In this document: positions 19,193 through 59,156 of the stretch, one piece after another
Numbering within the stretch: the stretch's first letter is position 1
How the letters are laid out: each line of letters begins with the position of its first letter
From: Phyllobates terribilis
Taxonomy: Eukaryota
Direction: 5' to 3'
Length of the DNA stretch: 64,000 nt
Assembly: GCF_046119375.1 (NCBI RefSeq)
Contig: NW_027362761.1
Location: forward strand, 63,178,001 to 63,242,000
Made by a program: the position numbers and the translations under genes
Notes under the pieces: generated by a model
Database searches by the model: none
The model's input: the letters and a program-made list of their open reading frames with translations, nothing else
What the model was told of the DNA's origin: nothing

Positions 19193-20679
19193 CAGGTGCA
19201 GCTCATTAAATGAGAATATCATCAAAAAGTTATTTTATTTCAGTTCTTCAATACAAAAAGAGAAACTCATTATATAGAGTCATTACAAACAGAGTGATCT
19301 ATTTCAAGTGTTTATTTCTGTTAATGTTGAGGATTATGGCTTACAGTCATTATTTCAGTAAATTAGAATACTTTATAACAGCTTGAAAATGATTTTAACA
19401 TCCGAAATGTTGGCCTACTGAAATGTATGTTCAGTGAATGCCCTCAATACTTGGTCAGGGCTCCTTTTGCATCAATGTGGCGTGGCATGGAGGCGATCAG
19501 CCTGTGGGACTGCTGAGGAGTTATGGAAGCCCAGGTTGCTTTGATAGCAACCTTCAGCTCGTCTGCATTGTTGGGTCTGGTGTCTCATCTTCCTCTTGGC
19601 AATACCCCATAGATTCTCTATGGGGTTAAGGTCAGGCGAGTCTGCTGGCCAAACAAGCACAGGGATACTGTTGCTTTTAAACCAGGTATTGGTACTTTTG
19701 GCAGTGTGGACAGGTGCCAAAAAGCTTGTCGGCAGAGGGAAGCATGAAGTGCTCTAAAATTTCCTGGTAGACGGCTGCGCTGACTTAGGTCTTGATAAAA
19801 CACAGTGGACCTACACAAACAGATGACATGGCTCCCCAAACCATCACGGATTGTGGAAACTTCACACTAGACCTCAAGCAGCTTGGATTGTGTGCCTCTC
19901 CACTCTTCCTCCAGACTCTGGGACCTCGAGTCCAAATGAAATGCAAAATTTACTTTCATCTGAAAACACCACCTTGGACCACTGAGCAACAGTCCAGGTC
20001 TTTTTCTCCTTGGCCCAGGTAAGATGCTTCTGGCGTTGTCTATTGGTCATGATTGGCTTGACACAAGGAATGCGACACTTGTAGCCCATGTCCTGGATAC
20101 GTCTGTGTGTGGTGGCTCTTGAAGCAATGACTCCAGCACCAGTCCACGCTTTGTGAATCTCTCCCAAATTTTTGAATGGCCTTTTCTTAATCCTTTCAAG
20201 GCTGTGGTTTTCCCGGTTGCTTGTGCACCTTTTTCTACCACACTTTTTCCTTCCACTCAACTTTCCATTAATATGCTTGGATACAGCACTCTGTGAACAG
20301 CCAGCTTCTTTAGCAATGACCTTGTGTGGCTTACCCTCATTGTGGAGTGTGTCAATGACTGCCTTCTGGACATCTGTCAATTCAGCAGTCTTCCCCATGA
20401 TTGTGGAGCCTACTGAAACAGACTAAGGGACCTTTTTAAAAGAAGCTTAGGAAGGCTTTTCAGGTGTTTTTTGTTAATTATTTTAAATTTACTGAGATAA
20501 TTTATTTTGAGTTTTCATTGGCTGTAAGCCATAATCCTCAACATTAACAGAAATACACACATGAAATAGATCACTCTGTTTGTAATGACTCTATATAATA
20601 TAGGAGTTTCACTTTTTGTATTGAAGAAACAAAATAAAGTAACTTTTTGATGATATTCTAATTTAGTGAGATGCACCTG
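19193..20679 (-). mobile_element. Tc1-like transposon, defective
   Basis: TA|CAGGTGCA…TGCACCTG|TA with long TIRs. Minus ORF 19874..20398 (MGKTAELTDVQKAVIDTLH…VVFSDESKF) and piece 19472..19720 ([12 protein letters not shown]). Frameshifts are present and the FQQD segment appears deleted. Confidence 0.9.
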
Positions 20680-21330
20680 TATCACTTAATGATCCAGGTT
20701 CTCCTTAGAGAGCATCAATCTTACAAAAAAAAAAATCAAAGCCGAAGTATCTAAATATATGTAGTTTATTAAAAAGTACCGTAATTGTTCAGCATCTTCC
20801 TAAACCAAATACATTTATTTTTTAGATTTCTAGTCAAAATTGAGACAGCCCTCTCCTGGAGGAGACTATTGTAAGATTGCTGTTGTCTTTACTCTCTCAT
20901 TTTAATGTCATACTCTACCCCCCCCCCCCAACCACTCCCTATAGACTACGACGCCACAATTACGAGGGGCATGTAACTTACCTCCTACTAAAGAAAATGG
21001 AAAAGGATGGTAACTTTAGATAGTACCTATATAACATGTTTGTAGGGGGATATAAGCTTTCTATGACTTTAGCTATAATCCTTGTAAGTTCATACAAATG
21101 CAAAAAATTGCTATGCAAATTTCTCCATTGCATGACCGTTCTCAAATGCTCAGCCTGTTTGTCACCCCATTTTTTTTTTTTTTTTTGAGAGCAGATTCGT
21201 AAAGATGCAAGGGATAGCCAATACTACTACTACTGACTCCATTTACCACGTAGGCAGCATAATAATCCAAAAGTACAAAATACATGTCCATGACAGGTCA
21301 ACGTAATAATCAATAACACACGGCTCTCAC

Positions 21331-22400
21331 CTGTAATTGAACTGTTTATCACAGAAGCTACACTGGAGAAGGTTCACTCCTGGATCATCCTGGTGATTTA
21401 GAAACTCTGAGTATGTCAATAGTAGTTCACATCTGTCACATTTGTGTACTATTCCAGCAAGGTTTTCGCTCCCATCTACGCTTTCCATTGCATTCGCATT
21501 CTCCAATCCAACTATGGTAGAATAGATAGTAGGCTTGAGTGGCTCTTCTTGTAACCTCAAGTCATTCAAAGCTCCTGAACCATCAGGAGTATCAGCATCA
21601 TCACATAAATTAATGCAAATATCCGCGGCTTCATCATCGGCTTCTTCTGAAGAACCATCATTGTGAATTGTAATAGGCACGTGTCTGTTATAGCCAGGGT
21701 TAATATAGGAGTTTTCTGGACTGTCACCCACAGGGCTCTCTCTCCCCAATCGTCCAGGCTTTGAAAGTTGTGTCCGCATATAGTATCCAGGCTTTCGAAC
21801 AACATATGTTTCTTTATAAAACGTTGGCCTTTTTTGTATCTTGGTTTTATCTTTTATTGGAGCCATGGTTTCCATCAGTCTTCTTTCCCCCTTATACAGA
21901 CTGTTGTTAATCTGAAGGTTATCCTGCCGGATTCTCTCTCGTCTCGGTTGGCTCTCAATTTCTCTCAACGCCAAATCCCGATTTGGCACACCATAATCAT
22001 CATCGTCTGGGACGCAGATTTCTTCCTTTGGACTAATGTTATGTGGACTACTGGATACATTGACCACTTGAACTGTGAGCGGGAGACTAACTTGCAACAG
22101 CTGGGCAGCCTGCATAAAGTCTTGCACATGACAAGTAGGGATTTTGTATGTATATATAAAATCTAGAAGATGACTGAAACCCTCCAAGCTCACATTGTCC
22201 AGAACCAAAAACTGCTGCTGCTCATTTCTGCTTAGTGCTGCATAGAAATACTCACTACACGCAGAAAGAACATTTTTATGAGCAAGAAAGATTTTACCCT
22301 CAACCATCAAGGAAACGTCACAAAAAAGGCCCATTGATTTTTGTTCATTCAATTTCTGGAGAATAGACCACCCATGTGCTTCTGGAGACATAGGATCCAT
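21331..22400 (-). CDS. ZBTB-type gene, first coding exon (BTB/POZ domain, acidic linker, start of zinc finger 1)
   Basis: First ATG at 22400 (in-frame stops upstream): MDPMSPEAHGWSILQKLNEQKSMGLFCDVSLMVEGKIFLAHKNVLSACSEYF…FSHLLDFIYT, a typical BTB. Acceptor ttttgtag| at 22465 (exon starts 22464); donor AG|gtgaga at 21331/21330. Confidence 0.9.
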
Positions 22401-22597
22401 GCTGTTTGTGCAATTTGAAGAGGACAAGTTAAACTACTGTCAGTTAAAAATTGAGGCACTAAACCTACAAAAAAAACAAAAAAAAACATTTTTTAGACAT
22501 TTTTCTTATAACATATATATTGAGGTTTGTTTTTCTACACATTTCTTTGCCATCATAGGTTTCTAGATACATTTTTGCTAAATATTTGCCAAGTATA

Positions 22598-24163
22598 CAC
22601 TGTGTGCAGAATTATTAGGCAAATGAGTATTTTAATCATTTTGATACTTTTTATACACGTTGTCCTACTCCAAGCTGCATAGGCTTGAGAGCCAACTACC
22701 AATTAAGTAAATCTGGTGATGTGCATCTCTGTAATGAGGAGGGGTGTTGACTAATGACATCAACACCCTATATAAGGTGTGCTTAATTATTAGGCAACTT
22801 CCTTTCCTTTGGCAAAATGGGTCAGAAGAGAGATTTGACGGGCTCTAAAAAGTCCAAAATTGTGAGATGTCTTGCAGAGGGATGCAGCAGTCTTGAAATT
22901 TCCAAACTTTTGAAGCGTGATGACCGAACAATCAAGCGTTTCATGGCAAATAGCCAACAGGGTCACAAGAAGCGTGTTGGCCAAAAAATGCGCAAAGTAA
23001 CTGCCCATGAATTGAGGAAAATCAAGCGTGAAGCTGCCAAGATGCCATTCGCCACCAGTTTTGCCATATTTCAGAGGTACAACGTTACTGGAGTATCAAA
23101 AAGCACAAGGTGTGCGATACTCAGGGACATGGCCAAGGTAAGGAAGGCTGAAAAACGACCACCTGTGAACAAGAAACATAAGATAAAACGTCAAGAATGG
23201 GCCAAGAAATATCTTAAGACTGATTTTTCAAAGGTTTTATGGACTGATGAAATGAGAGTGACTCTTGATGGGCCAGATGGATGGACCAGAGGCTGGATCA
23301 GTAAAGGGCAGAGAGCTCCACTCCGACTCAGACGCCAGCAAGGTGGAGGTGGGGTACTGGTATGGGCTGGTATCATCAAAGATGAACTTGTGGGACCTTT
23401 TCGGGTTGAGGATGGAGTGAAGCTCAACTCCCAGACCTACTGCCAGTTTCTGGAAGACAAGTTCTTCAAGCAGTGGTACAGAAAGAAGTCGGTATCGTTC
23501 AAGAAAAACATGATTTTCATGCAGGACAATGCTCCATCACATGCATCCAACTACTCCACAGCGTGGCTGGTCAGTAAAGGTCTAAAAGAAGAAAAAATAA
23601 TGACATGGCCCCCTTGTTCACCTGATCTGAACCCCATAGAGAACCTGTGGTCCATCATAAAATGTGAGATCTACAGGGAGGGAAAACAGTACACCTCTCG
23701 GAACAGTGTCTGGGAGGCTGTGGTGGCTGCTGCACGCAATGTTGATCGAAAACAGATCAAGCAACTGACAATCTATGGATGGAAGGCTGTTGAGTGGCAT
23801 CATAAAGAAAGGTGGCTATACTGATCACTAATTTTTTTTGGTTTTTGTTTTTGCGTGTCATAAATGTTTATTTCTAAATTTTGTGCACTGATATTGGTTT
23901 ACCTGGTGAAAATAAACAAGCGAGATGGGATTATATTTATTTTTTATTAAGTTGCCTAATAATTCGGGACAGTAATAGTTACCTGCACAAACAGATATCC
24001 TCCTAAGATAGCCAAATCTAAAAAAGAACAAAAAACTCCAACTTCCAAAAATATTAAGCTTGGATATTTATGAGTCTTTTGGGTTGATTGAGAACATAGT
24101 TGTTGATCAATAATAAAAATAATCCTCTAAAATACAACTTGCCTAATAATTCTGCACACAGTG
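22598..24163 (+). mobile_element. Tc1-like transposon with DD37E (TRT-type) transposase, near intact
   Basis: TA|CACTGTGTGCAGAATTATTAGGCAA…TTGCCTAATAATTCTGCACACAGTG|TA. 335-aa ORF 22817..23824 with WTDE…MQDN-x37-E(NLW); C-terminal frameshift only. Confidence 0.92.
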
Positions 24164-28986: not shown

Positions 28987-30636
28987 CAACCCCTGGCAAA
29001 AATTATGGAATCACCGGGCTCGGAGGATGTTCATTCAGTTGTTTAATGTTGTTGAAAAAAAAGCAGATCACAGACATGGTACAAAACTAAAGTCATTTCA
29101 AATGGCAACTTTATGGCTTCAAGAAACACTAAAAGAAATCAAGATAAAAAAATGTGGTACTCGGTAAGGGTAATTTTGTTCAGACCAAGCTGAGGGAAAA
29201 AAAATTATGGAATCACTCAATTCTGAGGAAAAAATTATGGAATCATGAAAAACAAACATACAAAAGAACACTCCAATACATCACTAGTATTTTGTTGCAC
29301 CACCTCTGCCTTTAATAACAGCTTGCAGTCTGAGGCATGGACTTAATGAGTGACAAACAGTACAATCTGGCTCCAACTTTCTCTGATTGCTGTTGCCAGA
29401 TCAGCTTTGCAGGTTGGAGCCTTGTCATGGACCATTTTCTTCAACTTCCACCAAAGATTTTCAGTTGGATTGAGATCCGGACTATTTGCAGGCCATGACA
29501 TTGACCTTATGGGTCTTATTTCAAGGAATGTTTTCACAGTTTTTCCTCTATGGCAGAATGCATTATCATCTTGAAAAGTGTCAACATCCCCAAACATCCT
29601 TTCAATTGATGGGTTAAGAAAACTGTCCAAAATGTCAATGTAAACTTGGGCATTTATTGAAGATGTAATGACAGCCATCTCCCCAGTGCCTTTACCTGAC
29701 ATGCAGCCCCATATCATCAATGACTGTGGAAATTTGCATGTTCTCTTCATGCAGTCATCTTTATAAATCTCATTGGAATGGCACCAAACAAAAGTTCCAG
29801 CATCATCACCTTGCCCAATGCAGATTCGCGATTCATCACTGAATATGAATTTCATCCAGTCATCCACAGTCCACGATTGCTTTTCCTTAGCCCATTGTAA
29901 CCATGTTTTTTTCTGTTTAGGTGTTATGGCTTTTGTTTAGCTTTTCTGTATGTAAATCCCATTTCCTTTAGGCGGTTTCCTACAGTTCGGTCAAAGACAT
30001 TGACTCCAGTTTCCTCCCATTCGTTCCTCATTTATTTTGTTGTGCATTTCCTGTTTTGGAGACATATTGCTTTAAGTTTCCGGTCTTGAAGCTTTTATGT
30101 CTTCCTTGGTCTACCAGTATGTTTGCCTTCAACAACCTTCCCATGTTGTTTGTATTTGGTCCAGATTTTAGACACAGCTGACTGTGAACAACCAACATCT
30201 TTTGCAACATTGCGTGATGATTTACCTTCTTTTAAGAGTTTGATAATCTTCTCCTTTGTTTCAATTGACATCTCTCGTGTTGGAGCCATGATTCATGTCA
30301 GTCCACTTGGTGCAACAGCTCTCCAAGGTTTGATCACTCCTTTTTAGATGCAGATTAACGAGCAGATCTAATTTGATGCGGGTGTTAGTTTTGGAAATGA
30401 AAATTTACATGGTGATTCCATAGTTTTTTCCCTCTGCTTGGTCTGAAAAAAATTACCCTTACCGAGTACCACATTTTTAATCTTGATTTCTTTTAGTGTT
30501 TCTTAAAGCCCTAAAGTTGCCATTTGAAATGACTTTAGTTTTGTGCCATGTCTGTGATCTGCTTTTTTCAACAACATTAAACAACTGAATGAACATCCTC
30601 CGAGCCCGGTGATTCCATAATTTTTGCCAGTGGTTG
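28987..30636 (-). mobile_element. Tc1-like transposon (DD34E), defective
   Basis: TA|CAACCCCTGGCAAAAATTATGG…CCATAATTTTTGCCAGTGGTTG|TA; long TIRs. Minus ORF pieces 30095..30289 (HTH) and 29343..29867 (IFSDESR…QDDN-x34-E). Confidence 0.9.
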
Positions 30637-30924: not shown

Positions 30925-31550
30925 AGGCCCCGTCACACTAAGCGATGCAGCAGCGATCCCGACAACGATACGACCTGTCAGGGATCGTTGCTGCATCGCT
31001 AATACATCGCTGGTGAGTTGTCAAACAGGCAGGCTCACCAGCGATGAGGGGAGCAGCGATATCGTGGAAAGAATCGTTCCACGATGTCGTGCTCCCGTTC
31101 CCAGCCTGCTGCTTAAGCAGGAGCAGGCTGGTAACTATGGTAAATATCGGGTTACTAAGTGCGCATGTGCCCCTAGTAACCCGCTGTTTACCATGGATAC
31201 CACTCTGCTACGGTGCACAGGAGCCTCCGCTCACCGTAGCAGAGTGGTATCTATGGTAAACAGTGGGTTACTAAGTGCACGCGTGCCCCTAGTAACCCGA
31301 TATTTACCATGGTTACCAGCCAGATCGTTGGTCCCGCTGGTCACACACAGCGATGTGTGCTGGCCAGCGGGAGGCCAACGACCAAAAAATGGTCCAGGAC
31401 ACTTTGCAACGATCAGCGACCTCACAGCAGGGGCCTGATCTTTGCAAAGTGTCACACATAGCGACATCGCTGGTGAGGTCGCTGGTGAGTCACCAAAACC
31501 GTGACACAGCAGCGATCTCGCTAGCGATATCGCTTAGTGTGACGGGGCCT
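30925..31550. mobile_element. PIF/Harbinger-type palindromic MITE
   Basis: TTA|AGGCCCCGTCACACTAAGCGA…TCGCTTAGTGTGACGGGGCCT|TTA; 3-bp TTA duplication. Confidence 0.8.
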
Positions 31551-32194
31551 TTACTGTTGGAAATTTGCTTTTCAGACCACTGATCTAAGAAATGATTGAG
31601 CAAGGGTGCCGACTCCACATATGGACATACAGTTATTCTGCCCTCTAGTGGCCTTATACAAAAGAGCAATATCGTTCTGGAAAATATAATGCAGAAATTG
31701 TCAGGCGTAGTGGTTTCCCTGCCATGTAACAGTTCATTAATACCAGGAACACGCACAAATCGCATATATGGAAGAAAGTGTAAATTGCAGGACTGCTATG
31801 GGGACTCAGGTGGACACCCTAGGGTCATAGCATTTCTTCTCTGTGCTTTTGAAAGACACAGTGAGCATGTTACTAGGCCATGCAACTATCCCCGATTTCC
31901 CAGGACTCCTGGGCCAAAAGAGGGTGAAGTTTGTAAACCCTGGGCGGGCCAGGGGCATTTCTGGGAGTGGGCAGAGATGTAGTTGGTGGATAGCACTTAA
32001 ACATTCCTTTCAATTTTGGCAACTATACTAATCTTTGCAGGTATTCTGCTGAAATGTTTCAAAAGTTTGTTAAAGAAATAACCCTTTATGGACCTGAGTT
32101 TTTTTCATCTTTTATGTTTTCGTTTTTTTTCCTCCCCTTGTTCCAAGAGTCATAACTTCTTTTTTTTAATGTTTTAGTCGACATATGCATATTG

Positions 32195-32430
32195 TCTCGT
32201 CAGAGAAAAAGAGGACTTGAACTCTATAGCGCCACCTATTGGAAGTAGCAATCCTACAAGTCACTTTTGACCCTTTAAAGAGTCTTGCAATATGATTTAG
32301 AATAAAAGCCAAATCAGAATCTCAATTTGCAGACACGGTGTTTCAGGGTTTTGACCCTCATCAGTGCAAAGTATGAGAACTGATTTGGCTAGGTGAGAGG
32401 CTCTGGACTGAGGTCTAAGGGGTGGCGAGT
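32195..32430 (-). mobile_element. Penelope-like terminal repeat fragment
   Basis: About 230-bp repeat shared with 48510-48740 that contains a minimal hammerhead. Assignment to Penelope rests on the known association of such ribozymes with these elements. Confidence 0.65.
32326..32370 (-). ncRNA. Minimal type I hammerhead ribozyme
   Basis: Minus strand: TTTGCA CTGATGA GGGTCAAAACCCT GAAA CACCGTG TC TGCAAA. Stem I TTTGCA/TGCAAA, core CUGAUGA and GAAA, stem II GGG/CCC, near-palindromic stem III ACAC-c-GTGT, GUC cleavage triplet. Confidence 0.8.
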
Positions 32431-33966
32431 GACATACCGGCTCTGGCATGCAAAGGTAAGGAGGCTTATTCGCCGTGCAATGCCCGTCATTTAAGGGTTT
32501 GTTTCTTGGAAGATGCGTTGTAGTTTTTTATGACACCATTTAATTTACAGTATAACGTACTGGAAAATGGGAAAAAAAATTACAAGTCTGGCAACATTGC
32601 AAACAAAACGCCATGCTTTCACAGCATTCACTGTACAGTAAAAATGACAATGACACGTGATATTTTTTATTATTATTTTAGAGGTGAAAAATTCTGAATT
32701 TTGTAAAGAAAAAAAAATTGTTTTGGTTGTCATATTCTGAGACAAATAACTTTTATTTTTCCGCCCTTGAAGCTTTGTAAAGGGGTCATTCCATTTCAAG
32801 TGATGCAAATCTGAATTTTTTTTTTACCTGATATCTTAGGATATTTATTTTCTTTGGTGTTTTTTTAAGTGCTACTTTACTGAATTAACAATAATACGTT
32901 TTGAATTTTTATCTTCATCAGTTAATTTTTTATAGATTTCTAAAGTTTAAAAAACAAACAGAATTTTGGGCTTATATGACTTTACATTTGTTTCGGGCTA
33001 GAATTAAGATAAAGAAATGGGAGAGGCATCATTTTGTTCAGAATTGCACATAGTCTTCATATCAAATTAAAGTATGTTTGTTGATATTTTGTTTTTGAGA
33101 AGTCAAATTCGAAATTTTGATGGGAGATTTCGGAAAAACTATAAGTTATCAATTTTTCAAAAAAAAATGCATGTATATGTTACTTGTGTTTTGGTTACAT
33201 TTGTTCAGGGATTCAAGTTGGGATCTCCGTAGGATCATATTTTGAAGTGTGATTTTCTAAATGCAGTCTCATCCTAATCATAGTGTATATCTGATTTTTC
33301 TTTGATTTTAAAATGACTGGTTTTCTTGAATACACAAAGGATGGTGATACGATGATGGACAAGAGAGCAAAAAAGTAATTTCTACAATATTGGTGGCATA
33401 CCGAGTGTGCACCACTACCACCATCCAGGACACAATTCTTAGGTCGTAGGTCAGCACATTCTGAAAATCCTATTTAGGCAGCAGTTGATATGAATTACTA
33501 AGTAAGATCAGGACAAGTCATGAAACTTGTTTTTTGTTTTTATTTGGAAAAACATAGACCCTGTCCTTTTAGACCACAGGCTGGGCAGATCTGAATTCAA
33601 GATTTTCAAATTGACACTGTTCATATATTTTGAAGTAAGATCCCTTTGAGATCCCAACGTGAATGTACAGGTGTGGCTAGGAGCATTGGAGGCACATGTG
33701 AATTTTTTGAAAATCTTATTTCATAATTTTTTTGGGGATATGCTTTTCAAAAACTTTTGCGATTGAGTCCGCATGGTTAAAATATTAACAAAGATATTCT
33801 TGTAACATATCAGGTGAAAGCCTGTACAGTTCTGAGTGTAATTATGTTTTTTTCCGTTTCTCCATCTTGGTTCTGGCCTGAGTTATGAGAAGAAACAAAG
33901 GCATGCAACACAGAAATTTGCATTTTTTTTTTTTTTTTTTTTAAAAACTTTGAAAAAAAAAATAAA

Positions 33967-34001
<35 letters not shown>

Positions 34002-34567
34002 TAGTACAGACCAAAAGTTTGGACACACCCTCTTATTTAAAGATTTTTCTGTATTTTCTTGACTATGAAAATTGTACATTCACACTAAAGGCATCAAAAC
34101 TATGAATTAACACGTGGAATTATATAGTTAAAAAAGTGCTTTTTTCTTGCCATAATACAAATTCTGACAGTCTATTCAGTAGGACTATCAGCTGTGTATC
34201 CACCTGACTTCTGCACAACACAACTGATGGTCCCAACCCCATTTATAAGGCAAGAAAACCCACTTATTAAACCTGACAGGGCACACCTGTGAAGTGAAAA
34301 CCATTTCCAGTGACTACTTCTTGAAGCTCATCAAGAGAATGCCAAGAGTGTGCAAAGCAGTCATCAAAGCAAAAGGTGGTTACTTTGAAGAACCTAGAAT
34401 ATAAGACATATTTTCAGTTGTTTCACACTTTTTTGTTAAGTATATAATTCCACATGTGTTAATTCATAGTTTTGATGCCTTCAGTGTGAATGTACAATTT
34501 TCATAGTCAGGAAAATACAGAAAAATCTTTAAATGAGAAGGTGTGTCCAAACTTTTGGTCTGTACTG
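34002..34567 (+). mobile_element. Internally deleted Tc1 element (MITE-like)
   Basis: …AGTACAGACCAAAAGTTTGGACACACC and GGTGTGTCCAAACTTTTGGTCTGTACTG|TA with long TIRs. Only the transposase C-terminus remains (KLIKRMPRVCKAVIKAKGGYFEEPRI*). Confidence 0.85.
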
Positions 34568-35729
34568 TATATACACACCTTCACATTTTGCATTCTCTAA
34601 CATACAAAATCTTAAAAGAATTGATAATATAGAGGAAAAATGCATTGGTTCACTTGATGGGGAATGACCCAAAGGCTTGTTTATTATGTCCTGAGCTGAA
34701 GGTACATTTTGATCGCTTTTTACTGTATTTTTGGAGGGAGGGGGCAGGACAAGAGAGAGGGGGTGGTTGGGTTTCCATTGAAATGCTGCAATTCTGCAGT
34801 TTGGATCTCTTTCTTTCTGGCATTTAAACTTATGGCTTAAATAATTTTACATTTTGCCAGATCAGACATTTTTTAGACACGATTACTAAATATTTTTTTT
34901 TTTTTTTTTTTTTAGCATTTTTCATTTCTTCATTTTTGAAGTGGGGAAAAAGGGGTCATTAATGTTTTGTGGCCCCTTTATGGGACTTGAACCTACGATC
35001 ATTAGACTGTAAGACCACTGTGGAGGACTAACAGGATAGTTATGGGGGTCTTCAGTAGACGACAGTAACCCATCGCTTTCCCGCAATCGTGTCGGAAGGG
35101 TCCAACATTTAAATGTTCTGTGGGACTAATGGAGGTACCCATTCATCAGTTTCTTAGGAGTGAACATAGCAGAGGCTGAGCATGTACACTACTGATCCAT
35201 TCACACAGGCGGCTTTGGGACTCTTTTTCATGACCTTTGTGGGGGCCCCAGTGGTTGGACCCTTGGCGTGGAAAGGTGATGCTGCATTTAGCATGTTGTA
35301 CGTGGCGTGTTTTGGTACACCATTTGTATGGGTGAAACTGTAAATAAAAGGTGAAATTATTGACATTTTTATAGAACTACTGAAAATGGAAAAAAATATA
35401 ACGACAGCACTGAAAGAGAGGAGATGCCTAAGACAACCAATCAGGCTGATGCTTTCACTTTCTAACCTGCCATCCACAAATGAAAGCTGTAATTTGATTG
35501 GCTGCAATGATTATCCTGGAAATATGCTGCATAATACAGCAACAGCATGCCTGGATTCAGACTGACAGAGGGGAAGACCGTGTGCACAGTAACATAGAGC
35601 CATTTATTCAGGTCTAAAACATGTGCATGTGACTACAACCTGCAAAACTGAAGTGTCCACAGAACAGCACGCACGCACCCTGCCCAGACCCACAGAACCC
35701 ACGACACACATTACATGCTGCAGACTCAC

Positions 35730-35790
35730 CTCTGTCCTCTGCCCATAGCAGCCTCGCTCCTACCCCAGACGTACTGACGCAACCAGGCGT
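35730..35790 (-). other. Probable first (non-coding) exon of the ZBTB-type gene
   Basis: Strong minus-strand donor AG|GTGAGT at 35730/35729 beside a CpG-rich promoter. The 5' boundary is unknown and the link to the 22464 acceptor is inferred. Confidence 0.55.
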
Positions 35791-36020
35791 ACATATTTGT
35801 TTATAAAGTTTGTTGAGGGAGAAAAAAAAAAAGTTGTGACGTCACACGTCGTTTGAGCGAATCTGATTAGCTGTCCTGCGCATGTGACGTGACCACGCCG
35901 GTGACGTCGGGTTTGGGGGGGGGGGGTTTTAGTTGATCTCGGGTGCCATTTTGGTACACCCTGACCCTGCTCCGAGGCTCCCCAAAATGTAACCCCTTGT
36001 GCTACTACAGGAGGAAAGCG
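35790..36020. promoter_or_regulatory. CpG-rich bidirectional promoter
   Basis: Local CpG enrichment; palindromic CRE TGTGACGTCACA at 35835-35846; CRE half-sites at 35885 and 35902; TGCGCATG (NRF1-like) ~35877; GCCATTTT (YY1-like) ~35945; GCGGAAAT (Ets-like) ~36024. Flanked by divergent GTGAGT donors. Confidence 0.7.
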
Positions 36021-36059
36021 AGTGCGGAAATCCGGGTGTAAGAGGCCGCTGTGGAGCAG
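36010..36059 (+). other. Probable first (non-coding) exon of the THAP gene
   Basis: Strong donor CAG|GTGAGT at 36059/36060; the start is approximate. Confidence 0.55.
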
Positions 36060-36412
36060 GTGAGTTAGCCGGGGTGCGGCCGCCATGGCTCCGGTGTGTG
36101 GCAGTGTCATGTGTGCCGGGATACAGGGGCATGTTAGCAGCAGTGCGGCTGGGGGCTTATGGAGCTGCCGTGTGTGCTGTGCAGCCTTCAGGGTGCATAC
36201 CCCAGAGGTCCAGACCCCACTAGTTGTAGTAATGTACATGTGATGGCAGTATTTCATCATTGTCACATTCATGTACTGTGCGCCAGTGCAGGCCAGCTCC
36301 TGCAGGGGGCGTCCCTAGCCTTGCTACACTATGGTCATCACTACAGGAGTGCGGGAGGCAGGGGACCTCTGTGAGCTTTCATCCCAATATGGGATTTCAT
36401 CCAGCGTTCCCT

Positions 36413-36498
36413 ATTATTATCCTACTTGTATAGCACCATTAATTCCACAGCGCTGTACACACAACAGCATCACTGTCCCCATTGGGGATCACAATCTA
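36413..36498 (-). mobile_element. V-SINE 3' fragment
   Basis: TATAGCACCATTAATTCCACAGCGCTGTAC…GTCCCCATTGGGG matches the tails of the other SINE copies. Confidence 0.65.
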
Positions 36499-37339
36499 TT
36501 CCACTAGTGCTGCAAGACTACAGTGCAAGCCACTGTGCTGCCCATCTGGAAACAGAATAAGAAACGCAAAGCCGTAAAAAGTGTCACATTTAAAGGAAGC
36601 GTGACAGAGAAAACCTACTTTGTAGACCAGCTGGGTACTATACTTATAGGATGATGGTCCGAGGGGTCCCTGGTGGCTTCTCCCACTGTGTTCCCCTAGA
36701 CCAGGGATGCCCAGCCTGTAGGTTAGGAGCCCATGTGGCTCTCGTGTCCATGATGTGTGGCTCGCAGCTGTCTTCCAGCTTGGTGCATTAGCATCGGGTC
36801 TAGCAAACGGCTACGAAGAGCAGACTTTGTGAGTAGTCTCACACAGAAGAGCAGCTCTAGAGCACATATACTTGTGGGAAATGGGGGTGATAGGATGATG
36901 CTGCCATTTAGAGGGGTGCTTGACTCTGGATGTGAAAGTGCGGAGGGATTGATTGACGTAAGAATATCATATATATAAAGTGATAACCCCATGGATGTAA
37001 GTATACTGCTGATAAGGGAGGCAGGGGCTCATGATCTAAGTGTGCTTTCTGTGGGGAAGCTTCAGTTGTCTTTATGCAGGTAGTGGGGGGCTATGGTTGT
37101 CACTGCGGTGTGTGTGGGGGGAGGGAGGAGGAAGACAACCAGATGTGGCTCACAAAATCTCTGAGAGCTAAACGGGGCTCACAAGATAAGAAGCTTTGGG
37201 GACCACTGCCTTACACTAACCGTTCTTTTACAAACATGCATAGGGAGAAACCTGTCAGTCAAGGGGAAGGGAGAAGCCTCCAGAGACTAGCCTCTTGGCT
37301 TGGTCCTCTTATACGCATGATCCCTGGGAAGCAATTTAA

Positions 37340-37821
37340 AGAGAACCTGTCAGCACAATTTTGCAAAGTAAAGCCTTGGCTGTAATGGCCCTGTAATACT
37401 GATTACATTGATGCCTTTGGTGAAGAAATCCGCTTTGTTGCTCTTCTTTAATCAGCATTTGCAGTTTTCTGCTAATTTTAGATTTTGGTGCACAGGGGCC
37501 GAACTGTACACGGGGTCTGCTCCTCCCTGTATGTGATTCCCCGGCCCCTCCGCTGCCTTTGGTCTGTGAATGACAGGTCACTGAGATTTCAAATAGAGGA
37601 GGCAGCAGAGGGGCCAGGGAATCACATACAGGAGGAGAAGACCCCCGTGTACAGTCCGGCCCCTGTGCACCGAAATCTAATTAGCAGAAAACTTCAAATC
37701 GTGATCAAAGAAGAACAACAAAGTGGATTTATTTACCAAAGAAATCTATGTAATCAGTTTACTGCGCCATTACAGCCATGATTTTACTTTTACATCACAA
37801 AATCATGCTGACGGGTTCTCT
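37340..37821. mobile_element. T2/Kolobok-type palindromic MITE
   Basis: TTAA|AGAGAACCTGTCAGCA…TGCTGACGGGTTCTCT|TTAA; the arms are inverted copies. Confidence 0.8.
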
Positions 37822-37973
37822 TTAAAGTAAATTTTAATTAAAACCACGCTACAATTCAGAGTGAAGCATACCTGGCCTCAATGACTGAGCCAGTGTGTGT
37901 TTTGTGCTGCCTTTTGTTAGAGGAATTAGCTGCCAGGTTCCCTGTAATAATCTTCACTCATGGTTGGTGACAG

Positions 37974-38240
37974 GATTTATATATTTATTTTACTCCCTTA
38001 TATAGCGCCATTAATTCCACAGCACTTCACAGACAATATCATCACTGTCCCCATTGGGGCTCACAATCTACATTCCCTATCACTATGTCTTTGGAGTGTG
38101 GGAGGAAACCGGAGAACCTGGAGGAGACCCCCACAAACACTGGGAGAAGATACAAACTCCTTGCAGATGTTGCCCTTGGTGGGTTTTGAACCCAAGACCC
38201 CAGAGCTGCAAGGCTGCAGTGCTAACCACTGAGCCACTGT
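37974..38240 (-). mobile_element. tRNA-derived V-SINE
   Basis: Reverse complement has a tRNA-like head (GTGGCTCAGTGGTTAGCACTGCAGCC…GGGTTCAAAACCC), the V-domain CTGCAAGGAGTTTGTAT…CTCCGG and a 3' tail …GGCGCTATATAA. Confidence 0.85.
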
Positions 38241-38256
38241 TTTACTCGCAGTATTA

Positions 38257-38644
38257 GGCTGTGTGCCCACGTAGCATTTTTCAAGCGTATATGCTGCGGA
38301 ATTTCCGCAGCGTAAACGCTTGAAAAACGCATGTATATCCGCACCCCATGGTCCCCAATGGGATTCCGCAAGTTCTATGCACATGCTGCAGATTTTTCCG
38401 CAGCGTTTATGCCGCGTTCAAAAATCCGCAGCATGTCATTTAATTTTGCGTTTCCGCAAGCGGAATTGCCTTTGTCCAATGCATAAAAAACGCAAGGCAA
38501 TTCCGCATGTGGAAAAAGCGTGATAAACGCGCGAAAAATGCGCGATAAACGCGTGCGGAATTCCGCATGCGTTTTTCCGGGAGAGGACTTGCATTTATGC
38601 AGCAGAAATTTTCTGCTTCATAAATGCAACGTGGGCACATAGCC
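38257..38644. mobile_element. PIF/Harbinger-type MITE
   Basis: TTA|GGCTGTGTGCCCACG…CGTGGGCACATAGCC|TTA; internal TGCGGA/TCCGCA subrepeats. Confidence 0.8.
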
Positions 38645-39519
38645 TTAGGAAAGCCAAATCTACAAAATCTACAGCCTTTAGTAGTTGATTATTCTCTTCT
38701 ATTGAGTGCCACTTGGAGTACTGCAGAGTGAACCCAAGTCCATCCATGCGGCAGTTGTCTGCCTATTTACGATTCTACAGGACCGAGCACCAAGAAAAGA
38801 GACTTGCTCAATCATTGGCTGATCATTGCGCCCCTATGAGTTATTAGGTTTCGGGCTGTAACTGTCAAAAAGCAAATCTGTAGTTCTGCATGGATGTGAA
38901 AAGGGAAGGTGCAATCTCTACTACGCTGTGGGATGCATGAGGGGTCTTAAGGTGGTAAGAAGTCATCAGTATTGTAAGTTACACTTGGTAGGTGGAGGCG
39001 CCTGTTACAGGTTTTCCATTGGAGCTTCACACAACGCCTCTCAACATAGCAGTGACTAGTTATCATTTGTCTAAAGCCTTTTTACAATTAGAAACAATAT
39101 GACTTTTCTTCTGTACCAGTTGTAATAAATCTCCATTTAATATGCTTTTCTTTCACTGTGGCAGGTGCTGGGAAGTGCCACCTTTCCCATGCAATGGCTG
39201 TTAAATAGATTTGCTTCTTCTACCAAGTTTTTGCTGCCGGGCTATCCACAGAAATAGAAAAAGGAATAGTAGATATGATTGATTTTGGGACAGAGCAGAC
39301 GGAATTCTAAATATTTATATTACAGGTTAGTATCTGAAATACAGAACATTTGTCCCAGACTGTCGTGCACATAGGAAACTTACCTTCATACATGGCGGAT
39401 ATGGAATCATTTCTGTGATTTTCATTTATATGAATGGGGTTTGAAAGTACCAATACACATGCTGTAGAAACTTACTTGTGGAGTGAATTTTCAGTAACAG
39501 AAATATCTGCAATTGCAAA

Positions 39520-39745
39520 TTATATATTTATTTATTTGACTCCCTTATATAGCGCCATTAATTCCACAGCGCTTTACATACATTACCGTCACTGTCCCCA
39601 TTGGGGCTCACAGTCTAGATCCCCTATCAGTATGTCTTTGGATTGTGGGAGGAAACCACAGAATCCGGAGGAAACCCACACAAACACCGGGAGAACATAC
39701 AAACTTTGCAGATGTTGTCCATGGTGGGATTTGAACACAGGATCA
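39520..39745 (-). mobile_element. V-SINE, 5'-truncated
   Basis: Same V-domain and tail as 37974-38240. Confidence 0.8.
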
Positions 39746-39779
39746 GCTGACCATCTAATGTGTATGCGGGCCTACTGAC

Positions 39780-40055
39780 CAGGGCTGTGGAGTCGGTAAG
39801 CCAAACCTCTGACTCCGATTCCTCAATTTCCACGACTCCCTCATAAATTGCTCATGTTTAAGTGATAAATTTACTGTAGCACAGATTCATCTCAGCTAAA
39901 AGTCTAGACCCTTAGATCAGGAATAGGACAGACATTTCATAACTTTCCCAAATACTTATTAAAAAATATTCCCCACAAACTGCATTGAACTGCTGTACCC
40001 AATTTATTATATATTTTAGGTGTTGGAGTCAGTCCATTTTATACCGACTCCACCA
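39780..40055. mobile_element. hAT-type MITE (CAGGGCTGTGGAGTCGG), partial
   Basis: Reverse-oriented homologue of 43478-43794; one end is truncated. Confidence 0.75.
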
Positions 40056-40435
40056 AAATGGGCTCTGACAGCAGATGACAATGGAGATCAGGATCATGCA
40101 GTTACAGATAAGACGACACTAGTTGAGTCTAAATGCCCATATAGGTGAGCGAATAATTGCAGAACGAGCGGTCATAGAAACGCCTGTTTTCTACTAAACA
40201 TGCCAGCAAACACAATGAGATAATCAATTGTCAAAGGCTGGAAAACTCCTTTAAGATATCAGACTTCCCTACTTTTTCTTTGCTGTTGTCAATGCATGTA
40301 CTGATTTGTATTTTTTTTTTTCAATGCAAAATATTAAATCTAAATTTTTACAGCTGTGATGAGACAAAAAATATTACTTGAGTGTTCACTGCATTTTTCA
40401 TTTGCATTGCAGGTTGCTTTATATGGCATCTAACA

Positions 40436-40503
40436 ATGCCCGCATGTGCTGCCATCAATTGCACAAGCCGACAGACTCGTGGATGTGGAAAGTCATTTCA
40501 CCG
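40436..40503 (+). CDS. THAP-domain gene, coding exon 1
   Basis: Acceptor ttgcattgcag| at 40412; ATG 40436 encodes MPACAAINCTSRQTRGCGKSFH(R); donor CG|gtatgt (phase 2). Confidence 0.88.
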
Positions 40504-40578
40504 GTATGTGTAACATGAAATATAAGATTATAACATTTCGTATCAAATTCCCATGTGTTGCAGTGTAGATCAGTGTAA

Positions 40579-41018
40579 AGGGAATCTGTCGCCAGGTTTT
40601 CGCCCCCTAATCTGAGAGCAGCATAATGAAGGGACAAAGACTCTGATTCCAGCCATGTGTCACTCACTTGGCTCCCTGCTGTCATTTTGATACAATCACT
40701 GTTTTAGTAACAGTAGATTATCCCTAGAGTAAACCTGCTGCCAGGTAGTCCTCCATATTCATGAGATCTGTATAACCCCACCCTTACCACTGATTCTGCC
40801 TATGCACAGTGAACACAAAGCTGTCACTCAGTGGTTTGGGCGGGGTTATATAAAGCTTAGCATTCAGAGAACTTCTAGATCTGCAGCAGAGACAACAGTG
40901 ATTTTATCAAAATTACAGCAAGCAGCCCAGTAAGTGATAAATCGCTGGAATCAGGGTCTCTACCGTTATATTATGCTGCTCTCACATTTCGTAGTAGAAA
41001 CCTGGTGACAGATTCCCT
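40579..41018. mobile_element. T2/Kolobok-type MITE
   Basis: AGGGAATCTGTCGCCAGGTTTT…AAACCTGGTGACAGATTCCCT; same family as 5416 and 51035. Confidence 0.8.
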
Positions 41019-42942: not shown

Positions 42943-43138
42943 GTTTCCACATGGGCGACCAGAAATTCTGAAAAAGTGGGTAACAAACATGCGACGGGAC
43001 ACTTTTAAACCATCTTGCAAAGCAGTGCTGTGCTCTGACCATTTTGAAGAATTTTGCTTTGACCGGACTGGTCAGACTATTCGGCTGAGGGTTGATGCTG
43101 TGCCAACTGTGTTTGCTTTCCCTGGGAAAACAAGAAAA
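42943..43138 (+). CDS. THAP-domain gene, coding exon 2
   Basis: Poly-T acceptor …tttaag|G; FPHGRPEILKKWVTNMRRDTFKPSCKAVLCSDHFEEFCFDRTGQTIRLRVDAVPTVFAFPGKTRK; donor AAA|gtatgt (phase 0). Contains the THAP W, CxxHF and AVPTxF motifs. Confidence 0.9.
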
Positions 43139-46572: not shown

Positions 46573-46863
46573 GATCGAAAATCCCAAATTTCTGTTCCAG
46601 TGTTTGAAGATGTTGAGGAAAAGTTTTCCATTCCACCTACTTCACTTCCAGAGAAGGCCCCGACTCTAGAGTCAACTGACAAACGTGTTATAGTGGAACA
46701 TGACTATTGCATTACAGACAGTCCAAAGGCTCTAAAAAAGAGGCTCGATGAAGCTTTAAGCAGCCTCCACAATGTGAAAAGAAGGCTGAAGATCACCCAG
46801 CAGAAATTCAGGAGGCTGAAATTTAAGGTTCAGTCACTTGACTTAACTGAAGAATCAGTGTAA
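46573..46863 (+). CDS. THAP-domain gene, last coding exon (HCF-binding motif, coiled coil)
   Basis: Acceptor ctttttatag|GAT in phase 0 and in frame with ORF 46600..46863: DRKSQISVPVFEDVEEK…VIVEHDYCITDSPKALKKRLDEALSSLHNVKRRLKITQQKFRRLKFKVQSLDLTEESV*. Confidence 0.85.
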   Translation, partial: DRKSQISVPVFEDVEEKFSIPPTSLPEKAPTLESTDKRVIVEHDYCITDSPKALKKRLDEALSSLHNVKRRLKITQQKFRRLKFKVQSLDLTEESV

Positions 46864-51482: not shown

Positions 51483-53554
51483 TTAAAATGTCAACATAAT
51501 AATGAAAGCCAGTATTCACTTAGAAAAAAATGTATATATTATTTTGATATCCCTAATGTCTGAATCTGTCATTTTAGATTAAAGTGGTTGTGCACTCATA
51601 GTAAACTTAATTAAAAATACAAAAGATGATGATTGGTCTCCAAATACATTGTCCTCTTTTTTTTTTTTTTTTATATACTACATGTCTTTTGAGTACAACG
51701 TTTGGCTTTCTTCTCCGAAGACTAAAAATTCCTAAATGGTAAAGAATCAAATGAACATTATTGGGAGTCACATACATTGCAGACTGCTTAGTCCTGTTCA
51801 GTGTGAAATCTATCAGACAAGCTCTCTATCTGCAATCCTTTCTGATTTCAAAATGTCAGCTTAGATCAGTGTTCTAAATAACCAGATAACATAAATGAAA
51901 ATCAAAAGTTGTCAGCTTTATGAGCACTCAGAAAAGCAGAAAGGTTTTACTCTTTTACTCATTTTAATACCATAAAAAAAAGTAATCCAAAGGGTCTGCT
52001 GTAATCCATAATATGGATGTCCCACGACGAACCCCGACTCTGCTACATCCGGAGGCTGTGATGAGTGGTGACTTAAGTAACGTTATCGCTCACCACGGCA
52101 GCCGGAGCACACTGAGGAGCGCGTGAATCCGGCTACTGTGATGAGCGTTGACGTCAGTAAGGTTATCGCCGTTCACAGCTGATGAACTGCGGTAACCTTA
52201 TTGACATCTCCACTCGCAGTGTGTGAACTTACTGCGGGTTCTCACGCTGCAAGCAGTGACGTAAGGTTACTGCAGTACATCGGCTGTGAACTACAATAAC
52301 CTTACTGACGTCACAGCAGCCGGATTCACACTCTGTGTTCCAGTTGCCGTAGTGAGCGGTAACGTTGCTGATGTCACTGCTCATCACAGCCACCATGCTT
52401 AGAGTGACAGAACGAAGCAAGTGCAAGAGGTAACTCTCCTTTTTTTTTCTATTCAAAGCAGCAGTCTGGGGGCATTTAAAGGGACTCTTGTGAACACAGA
52501 ACGACTGTTCAAACTAAGATTCGCCGCTCCATGGCAGGGCCAGTAATTTATATACGCCTTCCCACCTGCTTGTTTTCTCTCTTCTTTGACCGCTCTGGCT
52601 TCATAGATCCGAGGCAGAGATAGATGGAAACCAAGGAAGTGGAAAGATGTATATAAATGATTGGCCATCCGTGAAGCACCGATCGCCTGTACTTGGTTTG
52701 AACAGTCATTCTGTGACAGAGGCCCTTTAAAGAGGCTGTCTACCATCAGGACAACCCTGCCTTAATTACTGTATTCCCCAATGTAAAATAAAGACACCAT
52801 CACTAAGAACAGCTGTACAGATGAGCAGCGTCTAGCACCTAAAATTCACAGCTCTTCTGTACTGGATCGTTTGTTCCTCCAAAGCTTTGCTTTGTTGTAT
52901 CTTCTATAGTAAGGATAGCTGTGCAGATAAGAAGTAGCATCATGACCCTGCAATTCACAGATCTTCTGTCTGAAGAATTGAGAATTACCCTGGAGGTGAT
53001 CGTATACCTCCTGGGCTTTGCACCCGTTCCCTTTACAGTGCCATTCTGGTAATTTATCCTAATGTTTTTCATGCAGTCTGTCTGAAGAAGGTCTAATTTT
53101 TTTGACCGAAATGTAATTTTTGATTACATAGATTGTAAATCCAATAAAATCTTATCTTCTGCATCATAAGGCGTGCCGGATTCCCTTATATATTGGTTTG
53201 TGGATTGGTACACTATCCAGGTACCTGATCCTTTCAGAGAGTGACGAATACTCAACTTTGTTAATGGCATAAACTATAGTATATAGACAAACAAATATGT
53301 GCTACGTTTATTAGGAGGGGTGCATATTTTAATTAAAAAAAATAAATAAATACACATCCTACTCCAGCACAACTGAGTGTCAGAGTTGTGTATGAAACAC
53401 CACTCTTAGTAAATTTCTCTGTTTTGGGCCCTTTTTGCTGAAAGGTGGGAATTTCGTCTACGGCTTTGTTTTTAATTGGAAATTCCATTAAATAATTGAT
53501 GCCAAGTGCTATTATAAATCAGCAAATCAATGATGCCCATTATTAGTTACAGAC

Positions 53555-55053
53555 TGTAGCGCCGGCGTCCCTGCCCTCTGCTAGGCAGGGACGCTGTTCC
53601 CCTCACCTCTCTGCTCCGTGCCCGGCGTCCTCCTCCCGCTCTGCTGGCAGCGCGCGCTCCGTCCCGGCCACTGTGCTTAGGGCGCGCGCGCTCTTCCTCC
53701 CTCTTAAAGGGGCCGCGCGCGCCGTCCTAAGGAGTCCCCGGCCAATGGCCGGAGGACTTCACCATATATAAGGCACCTCCTCCAAAATGGAGGTGCCCGA
53801 GCAATGTTGTTGCACTGTTCACTACTCTGCTTCAGCCCTCAGGTCCCGTTGCCAGTTACCTGCCAGATACCTGCCAGCTTGCTGTCTTATTCCTGCCTGA
53901 TATTCTGCTACCTGCCTGCTAGCCTGAGGTCCGACGGTCTGCCTTACAACTCCTGTCAGTCTGTCTAAGGACCAGCTTGCCCGCTCACCTGGGAGCGCAC
54001 ATCAGCTACCTGCCTGCTTGCCTGAGGTCCGACGGTCTGCCTTCCAACTCCTGTCAGTCTGTCTATGGACCAGCTTGCCCGCTCACCTGGGAGCGCACAT
54101 CTGCTACCTGCCTGCTAGCCTACCTGGATGCTCCGCCGTCACGTGCAGTGACCACCTGCCTGTCCAGTGACTCCTGCCCGCTCACCTGGGAGCGCTCATC
54201 TGCTGCCTGTCTGCTAGCCTACCTGGAGGCTCTGCCGTCACGTGCTGTGACCACCCGCCTGTCCAGTGACTTCTGCCCGCTCACCTGGGAGCGCTCATCT
54301 GCCGCCTGTCTGTTGGTCTTCCTGGAGGCTCCGCCGTCACATGCTGTGACCACCCGTTTATCCAGAGACTCTCGCCTGCTCACCTGGGAGCTCACGTCTA
54401 CCATCAGCCGCCACAGGTCGTACCAACCCTTTACCCAGAGACTGCCCCGGTCACTTGCCGTGACCTCCTGCCCGTTCATCCAGAGACTGCCCCGGTCACT
54501 TGCCGAGACCTCCTGCCCGTTCATCCAGAGACTGCCCCGGTCACTTGCCGTGACCTCCTGCCCGTTCATCCAGAGACTGCCCCGGTCACTTGCCGTGACC
54601 TCCTGCCCGTTCATCCAGAGACTGCCCCGGTCACTTGCCGTGACCTCCTGCCCGTTCATCCAGAGACTGCCCCGGTCACTTGCCGTGACCTCCTGCCCGT
54701 TCATCCAGAGACTGCCCCGGTCACTTGCCGTGACCTCCTGCCCGTTCATCCAGAGACTGCCCCGGTCACTTGCCGTGACCTCCTGCCCGTTCATCCAGAG
54801 ACTGCCCCGGTCACTTGCCGTGACCTCCTGCCCGTTCATCCAGAGACTGCCCCGGTCACTTGCCGTGACCTCCTGCCCGTTCATCCAGAGACTGCCCCGG
54901 TCACTTGCCGTGACGTCCTGCCCGTTCATCCAGAGACTGCCCCGGTCACCTGCCGTGACTGCCTGCCCGTCTTCCCTGGTCGCCACCCGCTCCCTTACAA
55001 GGACCGCCCCCTTGTATAGTAGCTCAGAGGTTCCGCCTCCCAGACCCGTTACA
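53555..55053 (+). mobile_element. Solo LTR with expanded 45-bp VNTR
   Basis: TGTAGCG…GTTACA; 5-bp TSD CAGAC (53550-53554, 55054-55058); same family as 10091-11122. Confidence 0.88.
54436..54970. repeat. 45-bp minisatellite (~12 copies) inside the LTR
   Basis: Unit CCAGAGACTGCCCCGGTCACTTGCCGTGACCTCCTGCCCGTTCAT, nearly identical between copies. Confidence 0.95.
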
Positions 55054-58721: not shown

Positions 58722-59156
58722 TGTTAGAACCCTCCTGTTTGTTTTTTCTATCTTGTGTTTTGTGGTCACGTGACCATCTGCCTTTATATTCCAGCTCCGC
58801 CCTTTTGGCTGTGCTGGACTTCAGTGTTTGACTGTTTCTCTAGCCAGGTGCTTCTGTGCCTTTCTTTGTCAAGTTCGCTTGGTCCTCTGGGACCTCTAGT
58901 ACCTTTTTGTCAGTTTGTCTTTTTGTGTTCTGCAACAACTTCTCTGTTTAGGAGGTGTCCCATTTTTGTCCCAGTCCTTAGTTCTTTTAGGGACCCCTCC
59001 CTTAATTCTATAGGTCTTCGTTCAAACTAGCCAAGGACTAAGGCGGGTCTGTTCACTAGGAACAGGCAGCCCGCTACATCGTAGGGATTCAGCTTAGTCT
59101 TACTGTAGGGACAGCTTTCCCCTATCTTTCCTTAGTACTTGTTGCAGATCATAACA
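58722..59156. mobile_element. Solo LTR (second family)
   Basis: TGTTAG…ATAACA termini; flanks CTTGC/CTTAC (5-bp TSD, one mismatch). Confidence 0.65.

Follow-up and report, generated by a model that had tools for sequence, protein, structure and literature searches.

Within a stretch of 64,000 nucleotides from the frog Phyllobates terribilis (contig NW_027362761.1; hereafter the window, in whose positions all coordinates are given), a gene for a BTB-zinc finger protein (here ZBTBx) and a gene for a THAP protein point away from each other across a short interval, and the question raised by the locus is what kind of control this interval exerts. The original prediction took it for a CRE-rich, possibly cAMP/ATF-responsive promoter shared by two otherwise unrecognised DNA-binding regulators. 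In this study, we characterise the interval together with both genes and conclude that 35730-36060 is probably a conserved, ordinary CpG-island bidirectional promoter, serving ZBTBx leftward and THAP rightward, with THAP a likely frog-lineage arrival.

The two divergent consensus donors on which the prediction was built were both read in the sequence. The minus-strand donor, CAGAG/GTGAGT, has its last exon base at 35730 and the plus-strand donor, CAG/GTGAGT, at 36059, 330 bp away. Over 35651-36150 the CpG observed/expected ratio is 0.74-0.95 and the GC content 0.52-0.60 (measured 300 bp at a time), compared with 0.41 and 0.43 for the whole window. The interval therefore does lie in a CpG island; its description as the clearest non-repeat island of the window was overstated, since a second non-repeat island, which also carries a full CRE, lies at 58951-59400, directly upstream of a GRHPR-like gene. 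All motifs that had been named were located by a motif scan. These are a 12-bp CRE palindrome, TGTGACGTCACA (35835-35846, without strand), containing the full CRE TGACGTCA at 35837; a half NRF1 site, GCGCATG, at 35878 with TGACGT at 35885 and 35902 (35878-35908, plus strand); a YY1-like GCCATTTT (35945-35952, plus strand); and an ETS-like CGGAA at 36025. Additionally, a TATA-like TTTATAAA followed by an A-run occupies 35800-35834 (no strand assigned; a partly conserved block of the form ATAAAG ... GTGA ... A-run), and a CRE-like site, TGACGCAA, with TGACG at 35775, was found by scan and alignment within ZBTBx exon 1 (35775-35782, plus strand). The five CRE half-sites per 330 bp are the maximum for the window, equalled only by a repeat-like element at about 52.0-52.4 kb, and six full CREs are present in the window where 0.41 would be expected. 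Full or half CREs lie within about 150 bp of a start (35837, 35885 and 35902).

Nineteen public runs contain ZBTBx exon 2, and four of these, from three studies, were examined over 34750-40700; their spliced contigs cover exons only, as RNA. THAP contigs of 2404, 3825 and 2572 nt (runs X1, X15 and X16, from three studies) begin at 35927 or 35931 and run to 36059, giving a non-coding THAP exon 1 (35927-36059, plus strand) with its true start at or upstream of 35927. A GT..AG junction from 36059 to 39165 was found in three runs from three studies, and a junction from 39325 to 40413 in all four. The direct splice from 36059 to 40413 that had been predicted is absent from all four runs; its donor and acceptor are both real in RNA, but they are joined via a 161-nt exon. 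This non-coding exon 2 (39165-39325, plus strand) is supported by the RNA junctions, contains three upstream ATGs, and matches positions 1392-1549 of L004, a Logan transcript contig from another frog. THAP exons are present in all four runs, which had been chosen for ZBTBx exon 2, and the contigs carry no expression level or strand.

The coding part of THAP follows in three exons on the plus strand: exon 3 (40413-40503), with the ATG at 40436 and the first 22 codons of the THAP domain; exon 4 (42943-43138), with the rest of the domain as recognised by Pfam; and the last coding exon (46573-46863), with a linker, the motif EHDY, a coiled-coil-like tail and a stop at 46861-46863. Together they encode a protein of 184 aa. 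Exon 3 is 100% identical to the X. tropicalis exon over 22 aa and exon 4 is 89% identical, and in length and exons the protein agrees with the annotated "THAP domain-containing protein 2-like" XP_073518652.1/XP_073518659.1 of P. terribilis (184 aa). There are several upstream ATGs in the 5' leader, and the one at 40423 opens an out-of-frame ORF that overlaps the start codon. The THAP domain spans residues 4-80 (Pfam, E=2e-16); its C2CH residues C4, C9, C53 and H56 are invariant in the THAP alignment and the AVPTVF box is present. EHDY occupies residues 130-133, its H131 and Y133 not varying among relatives, and the tail behind it shows, by eye, a heptad-like K/R/L pattern that may form a coiled coil. 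From its [D/E]HxY motif, the protein is a candidate of the HCF-1-binding type.

On the opposite side, the BTB domain was recognised in a minus-strand ORF at 21327-22427 (Pfam, E=5e-22). It belongs to ZBTBx exon 2 (21331-22464, minus strand), which has its ATG at 22400, encodes the BTB domain and linker as well as the first half of a zinc finger that is split, and is 100% identical to XP_073518638.1 (P0001), a 606-aa P. terribilis RefSeq entry named "uncharacterized protein". Zinc fingers continue in exon 3 (6890-7059, minus strand), further exons lie past the window start, and the CDS range is 77 kb. Since the window exons were searched singly, full-length comparisons refer to database proteins or to the unspliced ORF of L004. 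The Pfam domains of XP_073518638.1 are BTB (E=1e-21), zf-C2H2, zf-H2C2_2 and zf-C2H2_4, so that ZBTBx has the ZBTB-type layout of an N-terminal BTB/POZ domain and C-terminal C2H2 fingers. Its automatic database names conflict (myoneurin-like, ZBTB49-like, ZBTB17-like), and no settled name exists. ZBTB5, the human neighbour of GRHPR, was considered as an orthologue and rejected; its BTB match is weak (E=9e-10, against 4e-15 for ZBTB17 alone), and finger number and gene orientation also differ. The annotated ZBTB gene range in P. terribilis and in Ranitomeya begins at the CDS.

A non-coding ZBTBx exon 1 was placed at 35730-35800 (minus strand), with its 3' end at the donor 35730/GTGAGT and its 5' end, the putative transcription start, at about 35780-35800. 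Nucleotides 1-30 of L005, a Logan transcript contig from another frog, match 35765-35736 and are followed by the exon-2 homologue (22467 onward), and positions 1535-1598 of L004 match 35794-35735 and likewise continue into the exon-2 homologue. Relatives thus make use of this non-coding exon 1 and of its donor region. In Phyllobates itself, exon 1 is backed indirectly, by the other-frog transcripts, by conservation of the donor and by bin depths: those of X15 and X16 would fit a contig whose end is at 35730, and run X4, which has no THAP exon-1 contig, has low bin depth at 35745-35943. The predicted junction from 35730 to 22464 accordingly stands on L004 and L005, from two other frogs, and on bin depths rather than on a direct Phyllobates junction read.

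The contig L004 also bears on how close the two starts are. It is a single 3.5-kb contig in which the ZBTBx mRNA reads forward and the THAP mRNA in reverse, the called start codons lying 290 nt apart. The THAP exon-2 homologue in it passes directly into sequence antisense to ZBTBx exon 1; therefore, in that species, transcription of at least one THAP isoform begins within or beyond this ZBTBx exon, and the 5' ends overlap. In Phyllobates the starts are separated by about 130-200 bp, hence by less than 1 kb, because the THAP contigs begin at 35927 or 35931 and the ZBTBx exon-1 homology reaches 35794; the figure is approximate, coming from contig ends and exon-1 homology. The TATA-like/A-run block is likely to be a core element for the ZBTBx start, judging from its position 20-30 bp upstream of the putative start. 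A divergent BTB-zinc finger and THAP pair is thus borne out by Pfam (BTB E=1e-21, THAP E=2e-16), their first exons lying about 200 bp or less apart in a single CpG island.

The pair is not confined to Phyllobates. Annotated head-to-head pairs are found in X. tropicalis (THAP 182 aa, ZBTB 605 aa), Spea bombifrons and Pyxicephalus adspersus, and in the last two THAP is followed downstream by a 2-Hacid_dh (GRHPR-like) gene. The window keeps the order ZBTBx-THAP-GRHPR-like, the first exon of the last gene lying at about 59653-59865. In Hymenochirus and X. tropicalis ZBTBx and THAP carry consecutive locus tags, and in about 15 frog species both proteins are encoded on equal-sized contigs, which we read as the same chromosome. 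Both genes have RefSeq models in P. terribilis as well as in over 20 frogs. The two genes are therefore not the otherwise unrecognised regulators they had been taken for, both being RefSeq models (XP_073518638.1 and XP_073518652.1), and the claim of an undescribed system is in part undone, since an annotated pair already exists in X. tropicalis, Spea and Pyxicephalus. In the literature, a search for an earlier description of such a bidirectional ZBTB-THAP pair in Xenopus gave no relevant result.

Conservation of the promoter was assessed in an alignment of 400 bp from Phyllobates, Pyxicephalus, X. tropicalis, Spea and Bombina. A co-regulated module responsive to cAMP/ATF, with the CRE cluster as the key shared control of two novel regulators, would draw on the density of the sites in Phyllobates, where 130 bp contain one full palindrome with three or four half-sites, the densest cluster outside a repeat. 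It would also draw on the CRE-like site at 35775, which aligns with TGACGTCA in Bombina, with TGACGTAG on the reverse strand in X. tropicalis and with a decayed TGATGTCA in Pyxicephalus. That site is, however, the only one of CRE type to hold its position (three of the four other frogs, Spea being without a CRE at this place). Neither the 12-bp palindrome nor either of the two half-sites downstream of it occurs at the aligned positions in any of the four, X. tropicalis, Spea, Pyxicephalus and Bombina, and TGACG is wholly absent from the 400 bp around the core in Spea and Pyxicephalus. Moreover, the genes are not novel, CpG-island promoters generically contain CRE, YY1, NRF1 and ETS motifs, and many promoter CRE sites are constitutive ATF/CREB sites. 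Because conservation in the four other frogs does not extend to the CRE cluster, a single site (35775) being positionally kept, the predicted cAMP/ATF responsiveness is a conjecture, and we regard such a module as very unlikely. If the interval is an ordinary bidirectional promoter, as we prefer, the CRE sites of Phyllobates would mostly be a lineage-specific addition to a generic housekeeping-type promoter and not part of a conserved logic.

What is conserved in the alignment lies elsewhere. Eighteen contiguous columns, invariant in the five frogs, make up the block GCCATTTTGGTACACCCT (35945-35962, plus strand), with a YY1-type core that reads AAAATGGC on the other strand. The block lies 15-35 nt inside THAP exon 1, downstream of the contig 5' ends at 35927 and 35931. 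Phyllobates, Pyxicephalus, X. tropicalis, Spea and Bombina share the corresponding 16-mer exactly; it was not found in the 10 kb preceding the THAP start codon of Ascaphus and Hymenochirus, where longer introns or divergence could be the reason, nor in the upstream flanks of gar and shark ZBTBx. The ATAAAG/A-run block (35800-35834) is partly kept in Phyllobates, Pyxicephalus, X. tropicalis and Bombina, the ZBTBx exon-1 core AGCCTCG is conserved in the five-frog alignment, and the ZBTBx donor lies at an equal relative place in Pyxicephalus, X. tropicalis and Bombina, that is, in four genomes with Phyllobates. The spacing from the ZBTBx donor to the 18-mer, about 215 bp, is kept in all five frogs. 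A gathering-threshold Rfam scan of 31000-41000 detected no structured RNA, and the conserved block is therefore unexplained by any non-coding RNA.

Two promoters that lie close together, THAP having arrived by chance with its own core in the form of the 18-mer and sharing no regulation with its neighbour, would fit part of this picture. The 18-mer lies wholly inside THAP exon 1 and the TATA-like/A-run block beside the ZBTBx start, which suggests separable cores, and the 16-mer is lacking upstream of ZBTBx in gar and shark. Yet the starts are at most 200 bp apart within one CpG island, and according to a passage of PMC3082894 such close starts generally give shared nucleosome-free regions and correlated expression in the genomes studied. 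The tight spacing between donor and 18-mer in five frogs, and the antisense overlap of the 5' exons in the species of L004, likewise speak against independence, and we consider it unlikely that the two promoters are separate.

An oriented YY1 motif, AAnATGGC(G/C), shortly downstream of the start has been described (PMC3491394), and the same source, summarising earlier work, states that YY1 sites commonly occupy such downstream places (PMC3491394). The invariant block contains the YY1 core AANATGGN(C/G), and GCCATTTT stands 15-25 nt after the THAP contig 5' ends as a putative site; the flanking (C/G) of the motif fits X. tropicalis, Spea and Pyxicephalus and does not fit Phyllobates and Bombina. 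The 18 invariant bases exceed what a YY1 footprint needs, however, and leave the GGTACACCCT half over. It might be bound, outside the YY1 core, by THAP or by ZBTBx, so that the pair would autoregulate. There are parallels of a kind, in that the THAP sites of P-element transposases have a TACAC-type core and truncated proteins of the KP type repress the promoter of their own element. Against such a feedback loop, no match to the THAP1 site, TxxGGGCA, is seen in the block, and the invariance may reflect an RNA-level function of the 5'UTR or two overlapping generic factors; we consider it very unlikely.

The two partners of the promoter appear to differ in age. The distribution of ZBTBx was established by a full-library HMMER search, by name look-ups and by a word search seeded with the shark protein; the HMMER search with XP_073518638.1 was dominated by giant poly-zinc-finger proteins, and its informative part was five BTB-bearing matches. 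Orthologue-grade relatives were found in lampreys, many sharks and rays, gar, bowfin, axolotl, a newt and all frogs, and the gene's exon breaks are shared by its orthologues in sharks, lampreys, gar, bowfin and salamanders; in shark and gar, tblastn places them at residues 356/357, 414, 455/456 and 493. No members surfaced in amniotes or teleosts in the HMMER, name and word searches, a result that is suggestive rather than proof. On sequence grounds, ZBTBx is an old vertebrate gene. In gar, it lies head to head with a GRHPR-like gene, adjoining a ZCCHC-type (ZCCHC7-like) gene, and no THAP-like sequence was found between ZBTBx and the GRHPR-like gene.

The THAP gene, which is syntenic in X. tropicalis, Spea and Pyxicephalus, is thus absent from the gar locus. 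All frog lineages, Ascaphus and Bombina among them, have orthologues of it (181-186 aa), and a word-seeded search that reached hagfish proteins of 49% identity found none in salamanders or caecilians; the 184-aa protein accordingly looks frog-specific, as far as these searches can tell. The lineage specificity claimed for the whole module would then apply to THAP and does not apply to ZBTBx, which is present in lampreys, sharks, gar, bowfin and salamanders. The nearest non-frog relatives of THAP are hagfish multi-copy clusters of up to 20 members, proteins of a starfish, ticks and sea urchins, and a pipefish protein, a patchy taxon distribution. The N-terminus of the pipefish protein (P0058) aligns with the whole frog THAP and then enters a Tnp_P_element (PF12017) HTH domain, exactly at the point where the frog protein ends. 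From this similarity and the patchy distribution, the frog THAP looks like the domesticated N-terminus of a P-element-type transposase.

These observations suggest the following course of events. Ancestrally, ZBTBx would have faced the GRHPR-like gene, as it does in gar today. On the frog stem, most economically, a THAP gene derived from a P-type transposase would have become fixed between ZBTBx and GRHPR, so that it came to abut the ZBTBx promoter and to use its divergent side. ZBTBx transcription would now start at about 35780-35800, just downstream of the TATA-like/A-run block, and THAP transcription at or just upstream of 35927, placing the invariant YY1-core block at about +15 to +35. A bolder version, in which a KP-repressor-like frog THAP was captured at the ancient ZBTB promoter and the pair has been kept for some 200 million years because the proteins cooperate or regulate the shared promoter via 35945-35962, is in our estimate a long shot.

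If the promoter is as ordinary as it appears, the understanding of bidirectional promoters is unchanged by it. The interest of the locus lies in its parts: ZBTBx is an unnamed, old BTB-zinc finger gene kept in lampreys, cartilaginous fishes, holosteans and amphibians; THAP, if domesticated, would be a tidy case of an old promoter giving rise to a new gene on its antisense side; and the invariant 18-bp block is a concrete element that can be tested in Xenopus.

Comparison with known systems places each component near, and apart from, a familiar class. ZBTBx shares with ZBTB17 (MIZ1), MYNN and ZBTB49 an N-terminal BTB domain, a long linker and five to six C2H2 fingers, and the best solved match of its BTB domain is ZBTB17 (E=4e-28 in fusion chains; E=4e-15 for ZBTB17 alone), but it forms an orthologue group separate from all three. 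The 184-aa frog THAP has the layout of the small THAP1/THAP2-type proteins, a THAP domain followed by [D/E]HxY and, putatively in the frog protein, a coiled coil, and its closest solved domains are those of THAP2 (E=8e-15) and THAP1 (E=3e-10). It is nevertheless not an orthologue of either; the true frog THAP2 proteins (P0073 and P0074) are 37-39% identical to it, and outside frogs its best relatives are proteins that are multi-copy or linked to transposases. With the N-terminus of P-element-type (THAP9-like) transposases and with the Drosophila KP repressor it shares a THAP DNA-binding domain followed by a putative leucine-zipper-like coiled coil. It differs in lacking the transposase catalytic part, in having a host-gene structure of three coding exons and in its retention across all frog lineages, and a repressor role for it would be hypothetical.

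The interval itself resembles the CpG-island bidirectional promoters of vertebrates, in which starts lie less than 1 kb apart, in its divergent orientation, non-coding first exons, single island and conserved spacing. About 10% of human genes have a head-to-head arrangement, according to a passage of PMC3082894. The usual CRE/ATF, YY1, NRF1-like and ETS-like motifs of the class are present, with a CCAAT box in Pyxicephalus, and CRE, YY1, NRF1 and ETS motifs form the standard set of CpG-island proximal and bidirectional promoters (cf. PMC3820735). The locus departs from the typical case in two respects: the THAP partner is apparently a lineage-restricted addition to an older promoter, and the most conserved piece is a single 18-bp block, not the CRE, NRF1 or ETS sites.

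In the Logan transcript contig of another frog (L004), the THAP mRNA, in reverse orientation, and the mRNA of the BTB-zinc-finger gene ZBTBx, in forward orientation, were joined in the single contig, the relevant region being 1386-1676. The homologue of THAP exon 2 was spliced in this contig onto sequence antisense to ZBTBx exon 1, and the 5' exons of the two genes therefore overlap in antisense in that species. In Phyllobates, the corresponding THAP exon is a constitutive non-coding exon of 161 nt on the plus strand (39165-39325), and it contains three upstream ATGs. A further upstream ATG at 40423 is out of frame, and its ORF runs across the THAP start codon at 40436. This arrangement suggests that THAP translation is controlled through leaky scanning.

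Within the THAP intron sequence, the stretches 37934-38729 and 39526-40122 showed an RNA depth of 10^4-10^5 with many short mismatched contigs, and look like dispersed repeats that are highly expressed. The ZBTBx intron sequence carries three Tc1/mariner-type transposase ORFs, at 19874-20398 (minus strand), 22817-23824 (plus strand; 335 aa, nearly full length) and 29343-29867 (minus strand). Long GC-rich tandem repeats occupy 53400-55150 and 61300-64000, and produce long repetitive ORFs in several frames. Scanning 31000-41000 against Rfam at the gathering threshold gave no matching family, although a minimal motif could score below that threshold.

Full CREs were also located outside the ZBTBx/THAP promoter. 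A CpG-rich element at 52000-52400 holds two of them (52149 and 52306); its internal segments are repeated or inverted (GTGATGAG...GTTATCGC), and its appearance is that of a repeat or transposon, not of a promoter. Another (59184) lies in a CpG island, and after that island a plus-strand gene for a GRHPR-like 2-hydroxyacid dehydrogenase has its first coding exon, at about 59653-59865; island and exon together span 58951-59865. The GRHPR-like gene is a conserved neighbour downstream of THAP in Spea and Pyxicephalus, and in gar it is the head-to-head partner of ZBTBx.

The 12-mer TTTTGGTACACC occurs a second time, without mismatch, in intron 1 of ZBTBx at 35310-35321, approximately 640 bp away from the 18-bp invariant block inside THAP exon 1. 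About 0.01 copies per window would be expected by chance, and no copy corresponding to 35310-35321 was seen in the other frogs. In the X. tropicalis locus with the annotated pair, GGACTACAAATCCCAGCATTCCC was observed on the reverse strand at about 7200-7245, approximately 190 bp inside ZBTBx intron 1. No Phyllobates counterpart of this site was noticed, and the X. tropicalis sequence is similar to the ZNF143/THAP11-type promoter motif, ACTACA...TTCCCAG.
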